Of a stretch of 64,000 bases of DNA, positions 1 to 30,433 are shown one piece after another. The DNA comes from Adineta vaga. Taxonomy: Eukaryota > Animalia > Rotifera. Every line of letters starts with the position of its first letter. The first letter of the stretch is position 1. The notes under the pieces are model-generated. The model saw only the letters and a list, made by a program, of their open reading frames with translations. It was not told where the DNA came from and ran no database searches. A program made the translations under genes and the position numbers. Location: assembly GCA_021613535.1 (NCBI GenBank), contig CP075494.1, forward strand, positions 8,184,001 to 8,248,000, written 5' to 3'.

Positions 1-2520
1 TGAGATTGTTGTAAAGGTTTTTGTTCAGTTAAACAACGATTAACAGATATGATTGTTGATGGTAAATTGTATTTTTTGATTAATTTTGATGAATAACTCA
101 TATCAAATGTTGAATTATATTGATTAGAAAAATATGTGAGACGATTCTTTTCTAAAATTACTTTTTCCTGATTATCAACTATCAATTGTTTAACATCCAT
201 CGGTTGATAATATTGAAAACTTCGATGATAACTGCAACGATTAACATACAAATCATTGTTATAATTCAGATTTTTAAATTTTAATTTAACTTACAAATAA
301 ATACATGGAACATCATCAATATCTTTTTCCACTAAATACTTATGCATATCATTTCGTATACGAATCCAAAGATTCGATGGTAAACGAAATAAACTCATTG
401 GTGGTAAATAATGAACAAAAACGGCTTGTAAAACTTCATCATCTAGCAAAAGAATATCTTCTATTTCAAGTTCACTTAATCCACCAGATAATTGAATATA
501 ACGCATCGAACGTCGAAATAAAATTTGACCATGTTTTATACCTAGTTGATTGTATAAATATCAAATGGCATCACGTGTAGTTTTAATTGAGAGAAATGCT
601 TTATCAGGTATTTCATTATATGAATGCCATGTTAATGTTTGATCATAAAGTAAAGAAATCAATAGTGGAGAGATATGATGACGTATGGAAAATTTCGGTT
701 TTAACCAGTCATATTGAATTGTTGTTAGAAAACGTCGATCTTTCTCTAACCATGATTGAAAAACTTGTTGAGCAATATGTTCATCAAATGGTTTTATTTC
801 AATTTCAGTGAATTGATTTTTATAGATTGTTTTCAATTGATCATAAATTTGATAAGCTGTTCTTTCGATTTCAATTTCATCAATCGTTTCCAAATGATAA
901 AGTGAACAGATTTGTTCGATTATGGATATTAATGGACGACGAATATCACTTGAAGATGGAATAGCACCCAAAAAACGAATTATTATAGAGACAGAATTTG
1001 ATTGGGAATACCATTTAGGAATCTACAAAAACATACTAATGATTAGTTCTGGTAAAACACGATTATGTCTTACTTCATTCACAAGTTTTGCCATAATTGA
1101 TGATTTTCCTGTTCCAGATTGTCCAACTAAAATACAAGACCCATGCTCTGTAGTTGTAATATATTCTTTAACCTATAGATGAGTATGAATGGATTTCGTC
1201 TTATATAAAATCATTCAATACTACTTGATCAAAGATTTCTGATCGAGGAAAGAATCGTTGAACTAATAAATTTGATTGAATCGCGTGTTCTAACACTTGA
1301 TTGTATAATTTATCCTCTCGTTTATGTTCATGAATTTTCATATGAAAATCAATTTGTATTTTAAGTGCTTGATAAAATCCTCGAAGAACTGATTCAGATA
1401 TTTCGCTCTACTAATATCATCTTTCCACTGTACCTAAGAAAAATCACTGAAGAATGTTATGGTGGATATGAAACCATGTGACAGACTTGATACGAATAAA
1501 TATCTGATGGATCCAATGACTGATGAAGTAAATTTTTAATATCATTTAATAATTGTTGTGTTTCAGTGATATTTTCTGTCTCTGGAAATTTAGAATCAAG
1601 TTTTTCAAGATCATTTATTTCACGAAAAAAACAAATCATTCGTCGAACTTTATCTTTATTATTTTTCAAAGCTCGATATATTTCTTGTGCCGTCACTAGA
1701 ATTGAAAATATGATCATGTTTGTTTCCTCTCTCTCTGCGAAAATCTTTACCTGAGATATGAAATTCATCTCGTTCATTTTTGGAAATCAATTTTTGTTCG
1801 TAACAAAGATCTGCTGCTTTTCGTAAGATATTTTGTAATTTCTTTTCTGATTCATTCCATTCTTGTTGATCTTCAATTGATCGAAGAAAATATCGTTTAT
1901 CAACATAATTCTCATCTAATTGATACATTTGCGATAGAAGATTTTTCTCTTCGACATTCGATAAAAGACATTGTTCAAACGATTGAAATATATAAGAAGG
2001 AATACATGCTGGTGCAAAACGACTGCCATATCGATGACTTAATAAAACCTTCAGCTAGCAGATAGACAACAAACGTAAAGTTCAAAAAATCAGTCTTACA
2101 ACACAATTTGTAGCCATGGACAATTGACAACAAGTATCCAATTCTTGAAGACACATATCTACTGTTCCATGAGTATTCGCGGCAGTTGATTGGATCCCCC
2201 AACGCATGTCTGAATACTTGAGGAAAAAACTTTGAATTCTACTTGAAGATACAGATAAACACAGATATTTTTCACCTGAAATTGAATGTTATATTTAGTG
2301 AGACAATAGTCACGTAATCGAGGGTAGACAAGATCGATAAGACCATTTCGTTCTTCAGTAGTATCTAATAATAAGAAATAACATTCCTTGATTTTCATAG
2401 AAAGCTTTTGTTTCCTGGCAGCCTACCAGTAAATGTTGAACTAACAAAAACACGCACAGAATTTAATTTACGATCTCCAACATGATCAAATCGACCACGA
2501 TACAATTGTTCATCGTCTAT
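1..2520 (-). CDS. DUF4062 + NACHT (NWD1/NWD2-like STAND NTPase), multi-exon, truncated at the left window edge; start codon unresolved, possibly degenerating
   Basis: Spliced translation gives VRVFVSSTFTD-TTEERNGL..YPRLRDYC..YSDMRWG (DUF4062), Walker A GQSGTGKS (~1095-1125), IIIRFLG, W....R.LT..Q and GLSELEIEDILLLDDEVL..RLPSNLW, all typical of NWD-like proteins; GT-AG introns. Confidence 0.8.
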
Positions 2521-22630: not shown

Positions 22631-23521
22631 TTATTTTTTACTATATTTTGTTTTTAAATATTTGCCTACAAAAGGATATGTGATTTGATCATCATCATCA
22701 TCATCATTGCTATTCTGATTAATAGCATTTTGATATCGTTTACGAATTTCCGTTGAACTTATATCAATAAGTGTCTCACGTTCGTCATCTAATGTAATAT
22801 AATATATATTCGAAGATTTTTCTTCTAAGCGTTTTATACGATGATCCGGATCACCAAGACGATAAATCACCGCACATGCAATATTTTTCTGACGAGCTAA
22901 TACTTCAACATGAGAACATTTATTGAAATGATCCAATCCACAGACATAAACAACTTTTAGTGGATAAGAAAGAACATGACGAGTTTTGTAAAGTTCTTTG
23001 TTGAGATATTCAGCTAATTTAATCGTTACTTCGTCGAAATCAGCGAATCGATCATATTCTAATTCACCCTTAGCAACAGAAATAAATGATTTTAAACCTT
23101 CGAGATCAATAGCTTGTTCACAAAGTTGACATCGTTCTTCACCAGGAATCCAATCTGTTGAACCCAATTTATTTCGAACATACGAATCACTATTTTCAAA
23201 ATATATGCGAAAGATAATATTCGAAAATCTTATGAAAATAAAACATACTGTGTTGGTGATAGATAAGCTGCAAGAACGTTCAATGGTCGAGTTTCATGTT
23301 TTTCAAGATATGTTTTAACTAATAAAAGATTTTTTATATGTGATCGATGAATTGGATTTAGAGAACCAGTGATAATTAAAACACAACTTAATGAAAAATA
23401 TCATATAAACTTAAAGATGAATTTATCATTGTTTCGTTTACTTATTATCTTTATCTGCAACCTTCTTCTCTTGACAATTTTCAATAATAATCTCTAAATT
23501 TGTATTCGTTTCTGTATACAT
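22631..23521 (-). CDS. NMNAT/NadD-like cytidylyltransferase-family nucleotidyltransferase (3 coding exons)
   Basis: VLIITGSLNPIHRSH (HxxH motif), YLSPTHDSYVRNKL, YVCGLDH, VIYR, DISSTEIR (ISST motif). Confidence 0.85.
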
Positions 23522-23874
23522 TTGATCCCACTACTTGTCTTTCTATAAGAAGAACACAATTTTCAATACTATATACTTACTACCGAGTTATGTTGTTATT
23601 GTTGACAGAGTAAGAAAGAACGAACACGAATAAAAAGAAAAGATTCACTAGAGGTCATACAATGTCGAATAGGATTGTATTTTTAGCTTTTATTATGACT
23701 AGAATTTAACGATATTCAATATATATATATATATGAGTCTATCGTTGACAATAAACACAAAAAAGTCATTCTAAAAAATAATCGATATAGATTATATATA
23801 TACTAAAGACACAACATATGATATAAACTAAAAAAACAGATTCATTTATATATATATATATATTAAAACTAATA

Positions 23875-26102
23875 TTAACTCATAATACCACCATGATCAG
23901 CATCCATTTGCATTATATGATCAACATCACCCGTCCGTTGATAAGTATCATTTGCAGCATGAACTCCACCAGGTAAAAATTTACTCTTTTGTGTGGAAAA
24001 TGAAGACGTAGGTTCTGTACGAAAATTAACTAAACCATAAATACGACCTATTTGAGAAGTTTATAATTCATATATTTTAGTAATTTAATTTTCAATGAGA
24101 AATATTTACGCATTATAACACAGCCAATGATAATTGATATCCAAATGAGTAATAATAGTAAGCAGACAACTAAAAATACTAATTAAAGAAGAAAAAAAAT
24201 GATGTTTCTTATTCATATTTATATTAAATTCATTACTTGTTGATCCATCGATAGTGACAGAACTCGTTACAGTTTCATTTGTACCAGATAACTCTTTCGA
24301 TGGTATCAATCTATAGAAAACAATCGATTATTAAACAAAATATCTATTCGATTGTGTTTAACAAACTTGAATAAACTTGCATAACTATTATTTTGACAAA
24401 TTTGATTGTTTGGCAGTAATGAACTTTTATAGATATAATAAATAAGAAAGTAGCAATTGGTTTGATTTGGATTTTCACATTCAATTAATAGATAATCACC
24501 TTTCATGAAAAAGAGATCGGAAAGAGTTAATTCAATATTACTTCGATTGAAATTTAATATCGTTTTAGCATCAAATACAGGTTGAACTAATTTACGTCCG
24601 AAATAACGAACACGAATGATATGCATACGCCAGAAGAATTTATTTTCATGAAAATTTAAATTTTTCACGGCATAAATCAAAAGAGGACCATTTGCTGAAC
24701 GACATGAAAAATCTAAATTGAGAAACAAATATGTTGAATGAGTAAAAGATATATTCGATGATGAACTAACGTGATCCTGTCTGTTTATTACCGACAACCA
24801 TAGTACCCATATAATATTTTGGTCTAAAAAGAGAAGGAGAGTAAAATTATGAAAATAGTGAACGATTTGTTGATGTTCAGGAGTGTGAAGACATTTTTAT
24901 CCAGGATCAATATTCTCTCGGTCATTTTTGATCTATTTAAGCGTTTCCGAGACAAATAAATCTATGTCAATGAATTCTAATTTAGAATAATATAATCATA
25001 TTCTCAAACTTCTCTTTCAATATTTAAAATTCATGACACGATGCTATTCATGTAATCTAATCATGCATTGTTTAAATAAATAAGAAATATTAACAAGAGG
25101 TACACAAGCAAACTATTTACTTATATTTGTTTGGCAATTCAATGACATTATATTATTCTCATTTTCTCGTTCTTCAAACTTTACCGTTTTTTCTATATGT
25201 TTATAAATGACAAAATACTATTCATTTTTTTTCTCTCTGAAGTACCTGTTATTATATGAAACTAATGGAAGAACTGATCGATTTTACCTTCTTTGAAAAT
25301 AGACATATATGTATACGCACAAAAATGAACTTACGATTGAGTAGATATATGTATTACAACACCAGATTGTTCTTTGTGTAATCGTCTTTCTCGTTGATAA
25401 ATGATTGTCAATATAATCGATTGAGTTTCATGGAATTCAAAACCACAATCTGTTCAAAGAAAATATTTCAATTACTGAATTTTTCATTTCTATAACAATC
25501 ATTTTACCATCAGCAGTACGAAAATTAGCTGATGATGAATAAGGTGTCCATTCATAGATTATCATCGATCGAGCATCATCACAAATATGGTCATCATCAT
25601 ACCTAGATAAATAGAATTCGTATGATATTGAATCTTTTCAAATGAAAGATATTTTGATACCAAATTGAACTCGATATTACTGGTATGTTACAAAGACGTA
25701 TAGTCAACTGTTGAACTGCTTTTTGATGAAGTTGAATCAATGGGTCAAATCCAACTTAACAAACAAAAAACATGAGAAATTCATCAAATTAATTGTTAGT
25801 TTTTCTACGCTAACGAAAATTGATCGTATAGTCATATGTGTTTCTTACCAATAGTTCCTTGTTGTATATCATCACTTGATGGATTATATCTAACATGTAC
25901 TGATTTCTATTGAAAAAAAATTAAAAAAACAGAGAATTCATTAAGATTAGATGTATACATGAGGTATCGACGTTGGTGCTGATGTATTTCCTGGTGCTTT
26001 TAAAGTAATATTGAATTTTTTTGTAAAAATAACTGTTTGAATATTTGGTAAAGTAATAAATAATAAAACAGAACAGAAGATAAATTCGTGAGAAAGTAAC
26101 AT
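23875..26102 (-). CDS. Type-I membrane protein with a PHM-like (copper type II monooxygenase) ectodomain lacking copper ligands (about 10 exons)
   Basis: Hand-splicing gives signal peptide MLLSHEFIFCSVLLFITLPNIQT, then IVGFDP..AVQQLTIRLCNIP..W..ICDD..IIYEW..CGFEF..IILTIIY..EQSGVVIH..PKYYMG..FSC..IYAVK..KGDYLLIEC..TNCYFLIYY, TM helix IFLVVCLLLLLIWISIIIGCVIM-RR and a ~55-aa tail; all junction phases are consistent. Confidence 0.72.
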
Positions 26103-28629
26103 ATTTAGCAATGGATAGTATGTCGCATAAAATTGTTATTTTCACCTGAAAAAGATTTTTCAATAAGTGGTTTATGACAAAAGAAACGGCGAAAGGCATA
26201 GCGATAGAGAAAAAAAAACGCAAAAGAAAAAACGAATGACGGTTGTGTCAACAAATTTAGTTTTTCATCATCAAGTATGTTTATCGATCATTTGTATATC
26301 GACTGTGTATAGGAGATGTCAAGTATTACTGATATTGTCTCGAAAGAAAAAGACGAAATCAATGAAACTGAAGAATGACTCAACTCAAAATTTGTACAAT
26401 TGATTCTGATGACAGTATTATAATTAGTATCTATAGTTTGATTGCTTAATAGATAATATTGATTCACATATGTTCGTCTATCTCTATTTTCTCTCTCAGT
26501 CTCTTGATAACCATTATATCCGCCACTTACCTTTCTCTAATCGATCAATATTGATGTTATTATTATTATTTCTATTCGCTCTACATGTGAAGGTAATGCA
26601 AAATGAAGAAACAGAGAAAAAAAAAGTTTTTTATACGATTATTGACTTTTCTGATTTTTGAAACACCTTTGAGAAATGAAATATCAGTTATCTATTTAAC
26701 ACATTTAATATCAATCTTATTTGACTGAAAACTAAAAAGATAAAATCCATTTGTACGATATTTTTATTATATGAATGAGATTGTTAATCTCTCTCTCTCT
26801 GTCTTTTACTTTTTGAAGTCCGATTCAATTGATTTAGATACTAAAGGATGAGAATAAGATCAACGAAAGTCTATGAAATAAAAGAAAAGTATGTCGATGA
26901 AATAATCTTTTACTAATCTTCAATGTCAGAGACTAATAACAAAACTTTATCAGTACAAAAAAAAAGTTTTTTAATAGTCTATTCACATAAAAAAAAAGGA
27001 CAAATGATCAGTATAAGCTTGTTTATCTTCGATCAATTATGAAAATTGCTTCAAGAGAAATAGTTCGTAGGCATTATTTGAACGTAAATAAACAATGTCG
27101 AAAGTTTTATTATTATTCTCGGTTCTTAAATTTCACATCCTTTTTTTCACGTTCCTGTTATTGAATGATGAAAAGCTTGTCTATGATTATTAATCATTAA
27201 TTTTAAAGTTTAAATCTGATAGATTATGTAAACATGATTGTTTAGGAAATTGGATATCAGTTTATAAATGTCACTTGATACACATTGACAGCCAGTCTTA
27301 TTGAACATCTTTTCTCTTTCTATATTCATGTTTTGATATGAAGTCTGGAATTCAGATAACATCTGTCAAAATATAAAAATGTTATAATTTGAAAAAACCA
27401 ATCTTTTCTAAATTACTTGTATCTTTATTGAAGTATTTTTAGTTTTCTGCATTCTATGCTTTTTTTCGTGTATTGAAATACCTTTTACTCGAAGCACAAG
27501 GTCAACTTTTCATTTGTTAATTACATAAATGTTACTTTCACTGAAACACACATTGCAGGTAGCACATGTTCGAATAATTAATGATTCTTTCATCTATTTC
27601 ATATAAAACAGGTTTTCTCTTACATATCTCATCGTCGCCATTCTCGTCGATGGCGTCATCGACGTCTTTTCTTCTTTTCTCTTTTTTAACTTAATTGTGA
27701 AACTTCTTACTTTATATAATAGATTTTTAAATGCGAGTAACACAACGTAGAGAAGAATAGCATCATCCCTAACAGCCGTAACCAATAGTAAATGATCTAT
27801 TTAGAGATTATAACGAGACATTTCTTCGGAAATGTTTCGAATAATATTTATGTAGGAACATCAATCTCATTAAGTATTTGCGTTAGAAACTACTTTATTT
27901 AAACATGTTGTTCTTTTTTTTATTATTGATTTAAAATAACATTCTACCTATTAACATTTGTCGTATAAATGAATAAAATGAACAAGAACAAACTCTAACC
28001 ATTTGAAAGCTCGCATTTTCTTTAGCAAAAAACCATCTATCATATTAAAATATTTGACTATATTCTATATAAAAAAAGCACTCTTTTTCTTTTCTTCAAT
28101 CCATTTTTGCATGTTAGTTAAAGTTATATATTGTATTTATATGAAGACATTATCGTCAATACCTCGTTTTTTTTCTTCTATCTTTTAGTAGTAAACTCCA
28201 GTCGATTCCTTTCGTTAAGGAAAAAAATCACATTTTTGTAAGTATGAAATCACTTTTTTCTCGAAGAAATATACCAAATTACACCCTTTTGTGAGTGAAT
28301 GCATCATCGAGTACTTCAAAGTACGAATAGTATACACTTTCAAATATCAATTTTTTCTCGTTTAAAAACTTTTTTTTTCTTCATTTCCTTTTCTTTTTTC
28401 TATTCCAATATATTTATCTAGAATCTTCTTCAAAGATATTTTCCTAGATAAAGCGTCCTCTATAAAATTGCGTAGGTTTATTTCTACTGGTTCTTAGATA
28501 AAAGCGAATGAAGGAAAATATTTTTGTTGACCTTGAAGAAAAAAGCTGACGGATGAATAAACAATCTGAGAAACTCTATACAACAAGTTATTTTTTATTT
28601 TTTTTTCAGATCCATCGTCTTCCTCGATC

Positions 28630-30433
28630 ATGTCCGAATCAAGTTGTAAATTTCAAATAGTTTAATTGAAAATAATCAAAATATTTATTTGTTGTTTTCA
28701 TCAGGTTTTAGTTATGGTGACAATGGAGCTTTTTCGCCACCAATGGACGTTACAAATCAGATGCAAAATAGCATACAGCATATAAGTGGCAATTCCAATT
28801 ATTCTAGTGGATCTGGTGGAGATTCACCAACTTCATTAAGTCCGGGTAAGTCCATTGAATGATCAAACGATTTCAAATATGAATTTATACGTTTCTTTCC
28901 TACTAGTACCAATGTCATCCGGTGGTTCATTCAGTGGAATTGGTGGCAATTCCAATTCATCAACAGGCTCAACGCCAACAGCATCAACGAGTGGAGCAGC
29001 TGCTGCATCTCGTTATGCTTGTGTAATTTGTGGAGACAAAGCATCGGGAAAACACTATGGAGTTCATAGGTACATAGATTAGCAAGGTTGATGAATGAAA
29101 AATTTTGGTTTCTCGTTTAGTTGCGAAGGTTGTAAAGGATTTTTCAAACGTACTGTACGCAAAGATTTAACTTATACGTGTCGAGATAATCGAGATTGTA
29201 TTATTGATAAACGACAACGTAACCGATGTCAGTATTGTCGATATCAAAAATGTCTTGCTGTTGGTATGAAACGAGAAGGTAAATTCGAAGCATTTGTTTT
29301 GTTTATTCAATGAAAAACAATTTATATTCGTTTGTATTGTAGCCGTTCAAGATGAACGACAAAAATCAGGCATTGGCGGTGAAGGTGAATCGCCCTCATC
29401 ACCAACTGCTAGTACTGGTAGTGATCATATTAATATTGGCATTGGTTCATCAAGTTCCGGTAGTGATGATGAAATGTTAATTGAAAAATTGATGGCTGCA
29501 GAATTATTTGTTGAACCAAAACTCAACTCATTTCATGAAGAAGATTGTTCTTATGATCGACTTTTATCGACAACTAATGCTCAAATTAGTCAATTAACTG
29601 AATGGGCTAAACGTGTACCTCATTTTGCTACTCTCTCAATTGATGATCAAGTTGCACTTGTTCGAGCGTCATGGAGAGATATTTTATGTTGTTCATTGGC
29701 TTATCGATCAATTATGGCACCAGATTGTGGTTTAATTTTATCTGTTAGTATTACTTTTGATAAACAAAATATCTTAGATTACATTACGATAGAGTAAAAA
29801 CATATCATCATGTTTTAATTCTATGCCGTCAGGCGCATCCATAGAATCTCATTGAGTACTTTCTCTTTAGAAGAAATATTTTCTTTTGTGTCAATCCCAT
29901 TTAGTAGTCTTCAGTATTCTTTATTCTAATTCTAATTATAATCCATCAAAAGGTTCACTATTGTTCTATGGAATCTTTTTTTCTTCATTTAGGATGGTTC
30001 ATATGTTCGTCCACATACAGCTGTTGATCAATCTCTTCAATTTTTCATCACTCGTCTTTATCATGATGTCGTCACAATTTTACGTGAATTAAATGTTGAC
30101 AAAGTTGAAATTACATGTCTTAAGGCTATATTTCTTTTCGATCCTGGTAAATGAACATAATTTGTCACTTTCATTGACAGTTGAATTTTTTATTTAGATG
30201 CGAAAGATGTTGTTGATACATCTCGTATATCTGAATTACGTGAGAAAGTTTGTATGTCATTGGCATCGTACTGCAAAAAGGTTCACAGTGATGATGTTGC
30301 TCGATTTGCTAAATTACTTCTTCGTATGCCGCCAATTCGTGGTTGGTGTATCAAAGGTATCGAAAATTTATTTTTCAATGGTACAGGACGATCACCTGAT
30401 ACGGATATTACAAATATGATTCGAAATCGTTAA
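28630..30433 (+). CDS. RXR: Retinoid X receptor / ultraspiracle (NR2B) nuclear receptor (multi-exon)
   Basis: [73 protein letters not shown]; [42 protein letters not shown]. Confidence 0.93.

Follow-up and report, generated by a model that had tools for sequence, protein, structure and literature searches.

The window analysed here is the whole 64,000-nucleotide stretch C5:8184001-8248000 (contig CP075494.1) of the bdelloid rotifer Adineta vaga, taken from a six-contig assembly of 100.8 Mb (G000). On its minus strand, from 26102 to 23875, it carries a gene whose product, taken as a whole, is in our judgement very probably an expressed, membrane-anchored pseudoenzyme derived from peptidylglycine alpha-hydroxylating monooxygenase (PHM), which would act without catalysis, by binding. 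To our knowledge PHM/PAM is the only enzyme able to amidate peptides. Its copper sites are among the best studied, CuH being bound through the HH of AHHMLLxGC and the His of LQVHY, and CuM through HxH and the Met of EMC. Alignment to PHM shows the loss of all six of these copper ligands at the corresponding positions of the A. vaga protein.

The gene model was built by translating the minus strand from 26250 to 23800 in three frames and joining the open stretches at GT..AG borders. It has 10 exons between the ATG at 26102 and the end of the TAA at 23875; all nine introns are GT-AG and in phase, eight of them measuring 52-94 nt and intron 5 measuring 511 nt, and the spliced coding sequence of 1221 nt reads without stops into 406 residues. 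Just one of the ten exons is long enough to show in a list of open reading frames (ORFs). An earlier note on this DNA, which had described about 10 small exons splicing in phase and mostly missed by such a list, is confirmed by the joined model and by the contigs described below. The product is identical, residue for residue, to an existing database entry (P0028, NCBI 'hypothetical protein I4U23_024515 [Adineta vaga]'), and this entry was used for the whole-protein searches. The exons, in window coordinates and with the residues that bear on the comparison with PHM, are the following:

25959-26102, minus strand: exon 1 (residues 1-48), with the ATG at 26102, a hydrophobic N-terminal segment (putative signal peptide) and the conserved sequons N31 and N39.
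25849-25906, minus strand: exon 2 (residues 49-67), first strand of the N-terminal PHM-like domain, with contig joints on both sides.
25661-25754, minus strand: exon 3 (residues 68-99), with VGFDP and AVQQLTIRLC; C89 corresponds to PHM C114, and Q82 (25713-25711) and Q83 (25710-25708) stand at PHM H107 and H108.
25508-25602, minus strand: exon 4 (residues 99-130), with C106 (PHM C131) and IIYEW (PHM ILYAW).
25335-25449, minus strand: exon 5 (residues 131-169), with GFEF, LTIIY and HKEQSGV (PHM HKDCSGV, C186 becoming Q158); I147 (25402-25400) stands at the CuH ligand H172.
24771-24823, minus strand: exon 6 (residues 169-187), linker to the C-terminal PHM-like domain, preceded by the 511-nt intron.
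24367-24712, minus strand: exon 7 (residues 187-302), nearly the entire C-terminal PHM-like domain, with the N242 sequon; L205 (24659-24657) stands at H242, F207 (24653-24651) at H244 and N272 (24458-24456) at M314; cysteines C190, C265, C273 and C292 correspond to PHM C227, C293, C315 and C334, and K203, Y274 and L276 stand at the substrate-anchor positions R240, N316 and Y318.
24237-24310, minus strand: exon 8 (residues 302-327), a short, poorly conserved stalk from ectodomain to membrane, too small for a PAL domain.
24110-24178, minus strand: exon 9 (residues 327-350), the highly conserved transmembrane helix, with W339, I343, G345 and C346 invariant.
23875-24047, minus strand: exon 10 (residues 350-406 and the stop at 23877-23875), with the near-invariant juxtamembrane RRI(R/Y)GLVNFRTEP and a conserved acidic C-terminal Q.D.EH.G.

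Spliced contigs from four public runs (X1, X2, X10 and X11), which belong to three studies, were compared with the window over 23700-26300, allowing for the stated offsets of their cuts. The RNA label of these runs is a guess and their transcript nature was read from the splicing: since intron-free contigs of one gene recur in three studies, the contigs are taken to be transcripts. Each of the nine introns is found in them as an exact joint; counted from the low end these are 24047/24110, 24178/24237, 24310/24367, 24712/24771, 24823/25335, 25449/25508, 25602/25661, 25754/25849 and 25906/25959, and the joint across the long intron 5 (24823/25335) is present in all four runs. The contigs reach 26147-26154 and extend the 5' untranslated region to at least 26154. 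The gene is spliced and transcribed.

Seven coding differences were seen between the contigs and the window, at 23935, 23945, 24146, 24453, 24509, 24644 and 26069; those at R387 and C273 are synonymous, T384N, I338V, F255L, N210D and V12F are not (the contigs are of low depth), and all seven may be alleles or strain differences. Rfam gave no match on window 23500-26500, including intron 5 (24824-25334), which no transcript contig covers; the Rotaria orthologues have two long introns, 2 and 5, of about 1.0-1.3 kb apiece. A (TA)n microsatellite at 23834-23878 lies immediately past the stop codon and was excluded from the contig comparison.

By standard family models the protein is unrecognisable as a copper monooxygenase. 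Searched exon by exon against Pfam, eight exons gave nothing at E up to 10; the full-length protein P0028, and P0002 and P0005 from the orthologue and paralogue clades, gave only sub-threshold noise in the transmembrane region (such as Cortexin, MLANA and Afaf, again at E up to 10); and PF01082 and PF03712, run over all six frames of the entire genome, matched about 18 other loci and not the locus of the gene itself. The relationship to PHM, which the earlier note had expected to be open to a check with Cu2_monooxygen and Cu2_monoox_C, did not appear with those profiles and becomes visible solely when a profile of the gene's own family (15 members, A2) is compared with PHM. Run against all PDB chain sequences, that profile returned rat PHM/PAM chains as its 13 best matches, with E from 3.4e-5 to 6.7e-4; the matches that follow are noise (E > 0.7) and DBH is not listed. 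The alignment spans profile positions 68-195 and 267-306, is collinear across both domains, and pairs (family/PHM) ..aieqltvhlC with TVHHMLLFGC, liYeW with ILYAW, Gf with GF, iltviY with VLQVHY, hkeqsgv with HKDCSGV, fsC with ISC, nCyFLiyY with MCNLYIMY and niC..n...dLF with MTC..N...DMF. The spliced product itself contains, in order, VGFDP, VQQLTIRLC, IIYEW, GF, LTIIY, SGV, SC, VKNLN, GD.L..C, TNC and C.F.IYY, and the structural landmarks among these had been reported in PHM order by the earlier note. A hidden Markov model of the family compared with the genome's own copper-monooxygenase ORFs was not significant (best E 0.08), with a congruent alignment. The look-alikes proposed by a protein language model were headed by plant SURNod19/MtN19, whose scores of 0.84-0.85 do not reach the trust level; PHM scored 0.75, and the result is a lead only.

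Structure prediction points the same way, and the models show a two-domain fold like that of the PHM catalytic core, as the earlier note had supposed. The AlphaFold2 model of the whole protein, made with A2, has a pLDDT (predicted local distance difference test) of 61, with the ectodomain mostly at 65-85. Foldseek fills the first 29 places for this model with PHM (E 2e-11, probability 1.0) and then lists human DBH; a VIA search against 48,161 representative chains gave PHM at Z 15.8 over 253 residues, DBH at 12.3 and double jelly rolls at no more than 9.8; and in an ESM Atlas fold search arthropod PHM and chordate PAM clusters rank first. When the ectodomain alone was modelled (residues 24-310, 27 sequences), pLDDT rose to 75 with a pTM of 0.80. 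For this model VIA gave PHM at Z 21.7 (259 residues, root-mean-square deviation 3.1 Å, 18% identity), against 17.2 for DBH and 8.4 for the unrelated fold next in rank, and Foldseek matched PHM at E 1.4e-12 and TM 0.62-0.67. The best-matching chains, 6ALA and 5WJA, are citrate complexes of the PHM mutants H108A and H107A; we take both to be closed conformers and give this no weight.

In the HMMER alignment H107, H108, H172 and M314 of PHM fall on Q82, Q83, I147 and N272, in agreement with the stretches VQQLTIRLC, LTIIY and TNC that the earlier note had placed at the ligand positions. An ungapped extension that starts from C190=C227, P196=P233 and A201=A238 places L205 opposite H242 and F207 opposite H244, and also equates K203 with R240. 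For this HxH pair the earlier note had named VKNLN; L205 does stand at H242, but VKNLN spans 202-206 and the position of the second histidine, F207, lies outside it. Judged by these alignments, both the CuH set (H107, H108, H172) and the CuM set (H242, H244, M314) have been replaced. An audit of the active site in the 15 family members gave the following residues at the six ligand columns:

H107 column: Q, E or R.
H108 column: Q, Y, H (one member), R or K.
H172 column: I, T, N or V.
H242 column: L, invariant.
H244 column: F, S, P, A or E.
M314 column: N, S, H (one member), T, Y or D.

Histidine therefore occurs just twice across these columns, once among the three CuH ones, and methionine never. 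As to copper sites rebuilt from other residues, every His and Met of the ectodomain falls short of 90% conservation in the family; the commonest His columns are 77 (9/12), 87 (9/12) and 155 (8/13), and the window protein has Arg at 87. N316 and Y318, two of the three substrate anchors with which PHM holds the carboxylate and backbone of peptidyl-glycine (PHM-substrate structure 1OPM), have become Y274 (variable, mostly Y) and L276 (invariant). The third, R240, which forms a salt bridge with the substrate carboxylate (PMC12164859), has become K203 (K in 13/15 members, Q in 2/15). The cysteines of three of the five PHM disulfides (C114-C131, C227-C334 and C293-C315) are kept, the four in the C-terminal domain being invariant; PHM C126 has become W99 (W, S or G in the family) and C186 has become Q158 (Q).

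The arrangement of signal peptide, ectodomain, transmembrane helix and short tail given in the earlier note is found in the spliced product, which has a hydrophobic N-terminal segment, one transmembrane helix (about 324-349) and a tail of 57 residues. The stalk between the C-terminal domain and the transmembrane helix measures only 22 residues. Since no more than this fits before the helix, and no NHL match was found in the full-length proteins, there is no PAL (NHL-repeat lyase) domain, again as had been noted. The family conserves the sequons N31, N39 and N242, the last in each of its nine full-length members, as would suit an ectodomain on the luminal or extracellular side. A signal peptide, type I topology and glycosylation are predicted features of the protein.

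A separate PHM with an apparently intact active site is encoded elsewhere in the same genome, a possibility that the earlier note had raised. This canonical gene (L010) lies at C6 ~11,965,600-11,966,700, minus strand, is multi-exon, carries AHHILLFGC, LQVHY, THAH and DEMC, and so retains all six copper ligands; it scores 91.8 bits on Pfam Cu2_monoox_C. Two DBH-like genes were also recognised. One, on C6 at 4.74 Mb (L001), has a DOMON-like stretch upstream of the core, recognised by eye. The other (L002/P0044, C2:12935858-12937168; 1357-2667 of the locus) is an intronless ORF of 437 residues for a C-terminally membrane-anchored DBH-like protein, whose bdelloid-rich clade, which also includes Didymodactylos, has six of six ligands invariant in its alignment (A3). 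With intact copper enzymes elsewhere in the genome, amidation and related chemistry would be covered, and the gene in the window would be an extra, non-catalytic branch. About 15 further Cu2_monooxygen/Cu2_monoox_C loci were seen, many of them multi-exon, for example C3:89686-90508, C3:2911323-2912532, C3:2959546-2960789, C3:9389083-9390354, C5:4056261-4057519, C6:6666011-6667354, C6:7075004-7076248, C1:4165623-4166746 and C1:14204838-14205309, which suggests a large expansion of the copper monooxygenase family in A. vaga.

The distribution of the family was addressed by searches of the genome and of protein databases. Exon 7 finds one genomic paralogue, at C2:11193925-11194281 with 47% identity, and the exon-10 tail matched this paralogue only. 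The complete paralogue (C2:11192478-11194770; locus L018, ~54-2346, plus strand) has the same exon order, transmembrane helix and tail, and likewise lacks the copper ligands, with RQLSVHIC, LTVTY, IKPLF and SNC in their places. The protein searches returned no A. vaga product of this copy, which may be unannotated. A two-sequence exon-7 profile, run exhaustively with HMMER against 1.84 billion representatives, gave 27 matches; apart from one Ig-repeat false positive these are two full-length family members and fragments, and there were no bridge sequences to active PHMs among them. Word-indexed searches with P0002 and A2 (5.8 billion proteins for the profile) gave 16-17 proteins. The named relatives come only from Adineta (vaga, ricciae, steineri) and Rotaria (sordida, socialis, magnacalcarata, sp. 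Silwood1/2), and the relatives returned carry neither a Pfam domain nor a protein name; the family has been found only in bdelloid rotifers.

The family falls into two clades. Clade A (C5 type) adjoins a cytidylyltransferase-like gene both in Rotaria and in the window, where a 178-residue ORF at 22634-23167 (minus strand) gives a weak cytidylyltransferase-like match (E 0.025) and resembles the neighbour downstream of the Rotaria orthologues; this shared neighbour indicates conserved synteny. For clade B (C2 type) the neighbour in both A. ricciae and R. sordida is a trypsin gene, and trypsin-like ORFs were recognised by eye beside the A. vaga C2 copy. Since both clades occur in Adineta and Rotaria, each with its own neighbours, the duplication predates the split between these genera. 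The ligand loss, common to the C5-type and C2-type clades in both genera, is old on this comparison of sequences. On the upstream side the neighbour of the gene in the window (28855-29800, plus strand) is a nuclear receptor (zf-C4, E 7.7e-24).

Mapping the exons exactly onto the genomic loci yielded the coding sequences of nine members, and the same ten exons were found in 8/9 members from Adineta and Rotaria, the A. steineri protein P0032 being a shorter annotation. A GY+F3X4 codon model over these nine sequences and 354 complete codon columns gave an omega of 0.237, with a log likelihood (lnL) of -7218.1 when omega was free against -7428.4 for omega = 1 on the same tree; omega = 1 is rejected (2ΔlnL 421, 1 degree of freedom), and pairwise NG86 dN/dS values range over 0.20-0.65. 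The gene is under purifying selection. This value, far from 1, and the transcripts from three studies bear out the description of the gene as retained in the earlier note. A product that lacks the ligands, from a gene that is nonetheless transcribed and maintained by purifying selection, can be classed as a pseudoenzyme. By region, the mean majority fraction is 0.93 in the juxtamembrane segment, 0.81 in the transmembrane helix, 0.67 in the C-terminal domain and 0.64 in the N-terminal domain, and the most conserved segments of the family are the transmembrane helix and the juxtamembrane RRI(R/Y)GLVNFRTEP.

These observations are consistent with the following picture. The protein would be a type I membrane glycoprotein, with a signal peptide, a two-domain ectodomain, a 22-residue stalk, a transmembrane helix and a 57-residue cytosolic tail, and its ectodomain would be a diverged copy of the PHM catalytic core that has kept both beta-sandwich domains and probably three disulfides. 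The loss of the copper ligands, shared by the C5 and C2 clades of Adineta and Rotaria, is old, and purifying selection has kept the gene since. Going by its residues, copper- and ascorbate-dependent hydroxylation should be impossible for this protein, and since all six copper ligands and two of the three substrate anchors are replaced, it would have to act in a non-catalytic way. The dead PHM cleft, or the surface of the ectodomain, may bind a luminal or extracellular partner, and the transmembrane and juxtamembrane segments may couple the ectodomain to a partner in the membrane or cytosol, for trafficking or signalling. That conservation is strongest in the transmembrane helix and juxtamembrane motif points to such a non-catalytic, partner-binding role. 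As a specific mechanism, a membrane-tethered binding or scaffolding subunit is proposed tentatively, as a possibility more doubtful than the pseudoenzyme status itself. It should be noted that several results weigh against a PHM-derived pseudoenzyme. Neither the exons, nor the full protein, nor the locus matches Cu2_monooxygen or Cu2_monoox_C, and when the family was compared with the DBH-like clade of bdelloids, hhalign gave a probability of 6.5% (E 0.0056), with a congruent alignment. The match of H242/H244 depends on the ungapped HMMER extension and on a predicted strand at 197-204; the AlphaFold2 models, built on shallow alignments of 15 and 27 sequences, are of moderate confidence. Close pairs have NG86 values of 0.40-0.65 overall and of about 1.1-1.25 in the transmembrane helix and tail, where changes are few, so that constraint is not strong everywhere.

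A special case of the pseudoenzyme reading, close to the peptide-binding receptor or decoy guessed at in the earlier note, would be a receptor, decoy or sorting chaperone for glycine-extended or amidated peptides that uses the PHM pocket without turnover. In the models the interdomain cleft of the PHM fold is retained, a membrane anchor together with a conserved tail would suit a receptor or a sorting function, and K203 is a conservative replacement of R240, the residue of the substrate-carboxylate salt bridge (PMC12164859). The other two anchors are nevertheless gone, N316 having become Y274 and Y318 the invariant L276, and even the K203 column is Q in two members; the guess is weakened by this and not supported, and we consider it unlikely. 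Narrower still, and somewhat less likely again, is a dead membrane-anchored sensor or sorting receptor for such peptides that signals or traffics through the transmembrane helix and juxtamembrane motif; if true, it would be a new class of PHM-derived component of neuropeptide pathways. That the protein might still be a metalloenzyme, with other residues rebuilding one or two metal sites for a different redox reaction, is very unlikely. There are partly conserved histidines (H77 in 9/12, the R87 column in 9/12, H155 in 8/13), and Gln or Asn at the old ligand positions could coordinate a metal weakly. None of these histidines is invariant, however, and the window protein has Arg at one of them; three of the old ligand positions are aliphatic or aromatic (I147, the invariant L205 and F207), and there is no conserved Met for a CuM-like site. 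A rebuilt metal site was rejected on the absence of any invariant His and of any conserved Met in the ectodomain.

The two remaining explanations deny the PHM ancestry or the function. Under the former, the likeness to PHM would be convergent or an artefact, an unrelated double beta-sandwich having been forced into the PHM shape by AlphaFold, in keeping with the failure of the Pfam models, the weak hhalign result to the DBH-like clade and the presence of double jelly rolls (PNGase F, viral capsid proteins) in the fold lists. The profile search, however, is independent of any model and ranks PHM alone (E 3.4e-5) with motifs collinear in both domains, the cysteines match three PHM disulfides, and PHM stands 13 Z units above generic jelly rolls; convergence was rejected on the profile search, the disulfide cysteines and this gap in Z, and is extremely unlikely. 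A decaying or functionless gene copy would account for the loss of every catalytic residue, for an NG86 value of 0.65 between two close Rotaria species and for the non-synonymous nature of 5/7 coding differences between contigs and window. Against it, two paralogue clades and at least seven species or lineages have an unbroken reading frame and an intact set of ten exons, the estimate of omega is 0.24 and a value of 1 is rejected (2ΔlnL 421), spliced transcripts occur in three studies, and the cysteines and the transmembrane motif are invariant. The pseudogene reading was rejected on the intact structure, omega and transcription; it is largely refuted, and we give it next to no credence.

A literature search for a PHM-derived pseudoenzyme, or a retained homologue free of copper ligands, found none, which, with incomplete coverage of the literature, is absence of evidence only. 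The copper-less, lineage-restricted variant of this well-known enzyme fold appears to be new. Its reach is limited, with a role that is inferred and a family known solely from bdelloid rotifers; still, the family shows that the PHM scaffold is reusable without copper. Non-catalytic roles in trafficking, cilia and signalling have been proposed for PAM (PMC6529398), and the family offers a natural 'all-ligand knock-out' for such roles of the PHM fold. In addition, about 40 database proteins, now listed as 'unnamed protein product' or 'hypothetical protein' and with no Pfam domain, gain an annotation at the level of fold.

Compared with known systems, the protein shares with PNGase F and the double jelly-roll capsid proteins the arrangement of two tandem jelly-roll sandwiches, a likeness at the level of fold only (Z ~8 versus 21.7 for PHM), with no sequence signal between them. 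The catalytic-core fold predicted for it is also that of DBH and the DBH-like proteins (4ZEL, Z 17.2), of which P0044 is likewise membrane-anchored at its C-terminus; the P0044 clade, unlike the window protein, keeps all ligands, and the C6 4.74 Mb gene bears a DOMON-like stretch. By sequence, where DBH is absent from the profile matches, as well as by structure, the window protein appears nearer to PHM than to DBH. With the canonical PHM of the same genome, L010, it has in common the motifs ..LLFGC, IVYAW, an LQVHY-type strand, SG, GD....C and.C.FY..Y, but L010 keeps HH, H, HxH and M together with a Pfam score, all of which are missing from the window gene. The window protein differs from PHM in lacking the six copper ligands, the anchors N316/Y318 and the disulfides C47-C186 and C81-C126, and in lying below Pfam detection; from bifunctional PAM in having no PAL domain; and from PAM in a tail without detectable similarity outside its own family. 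What it shares with the membrane isoforms of PAM is a predicted secretory topology, in which the luminal domains are followed by a single transmembrane helix and a cytosolic tail, and with the PHM core of rat PAM (1PHM, 1OPM, 1SDW, 6ALA) a predicted two-domain beta-sandwich of about 260 residues, with collinear motifs and the cysteines of three disulfides.

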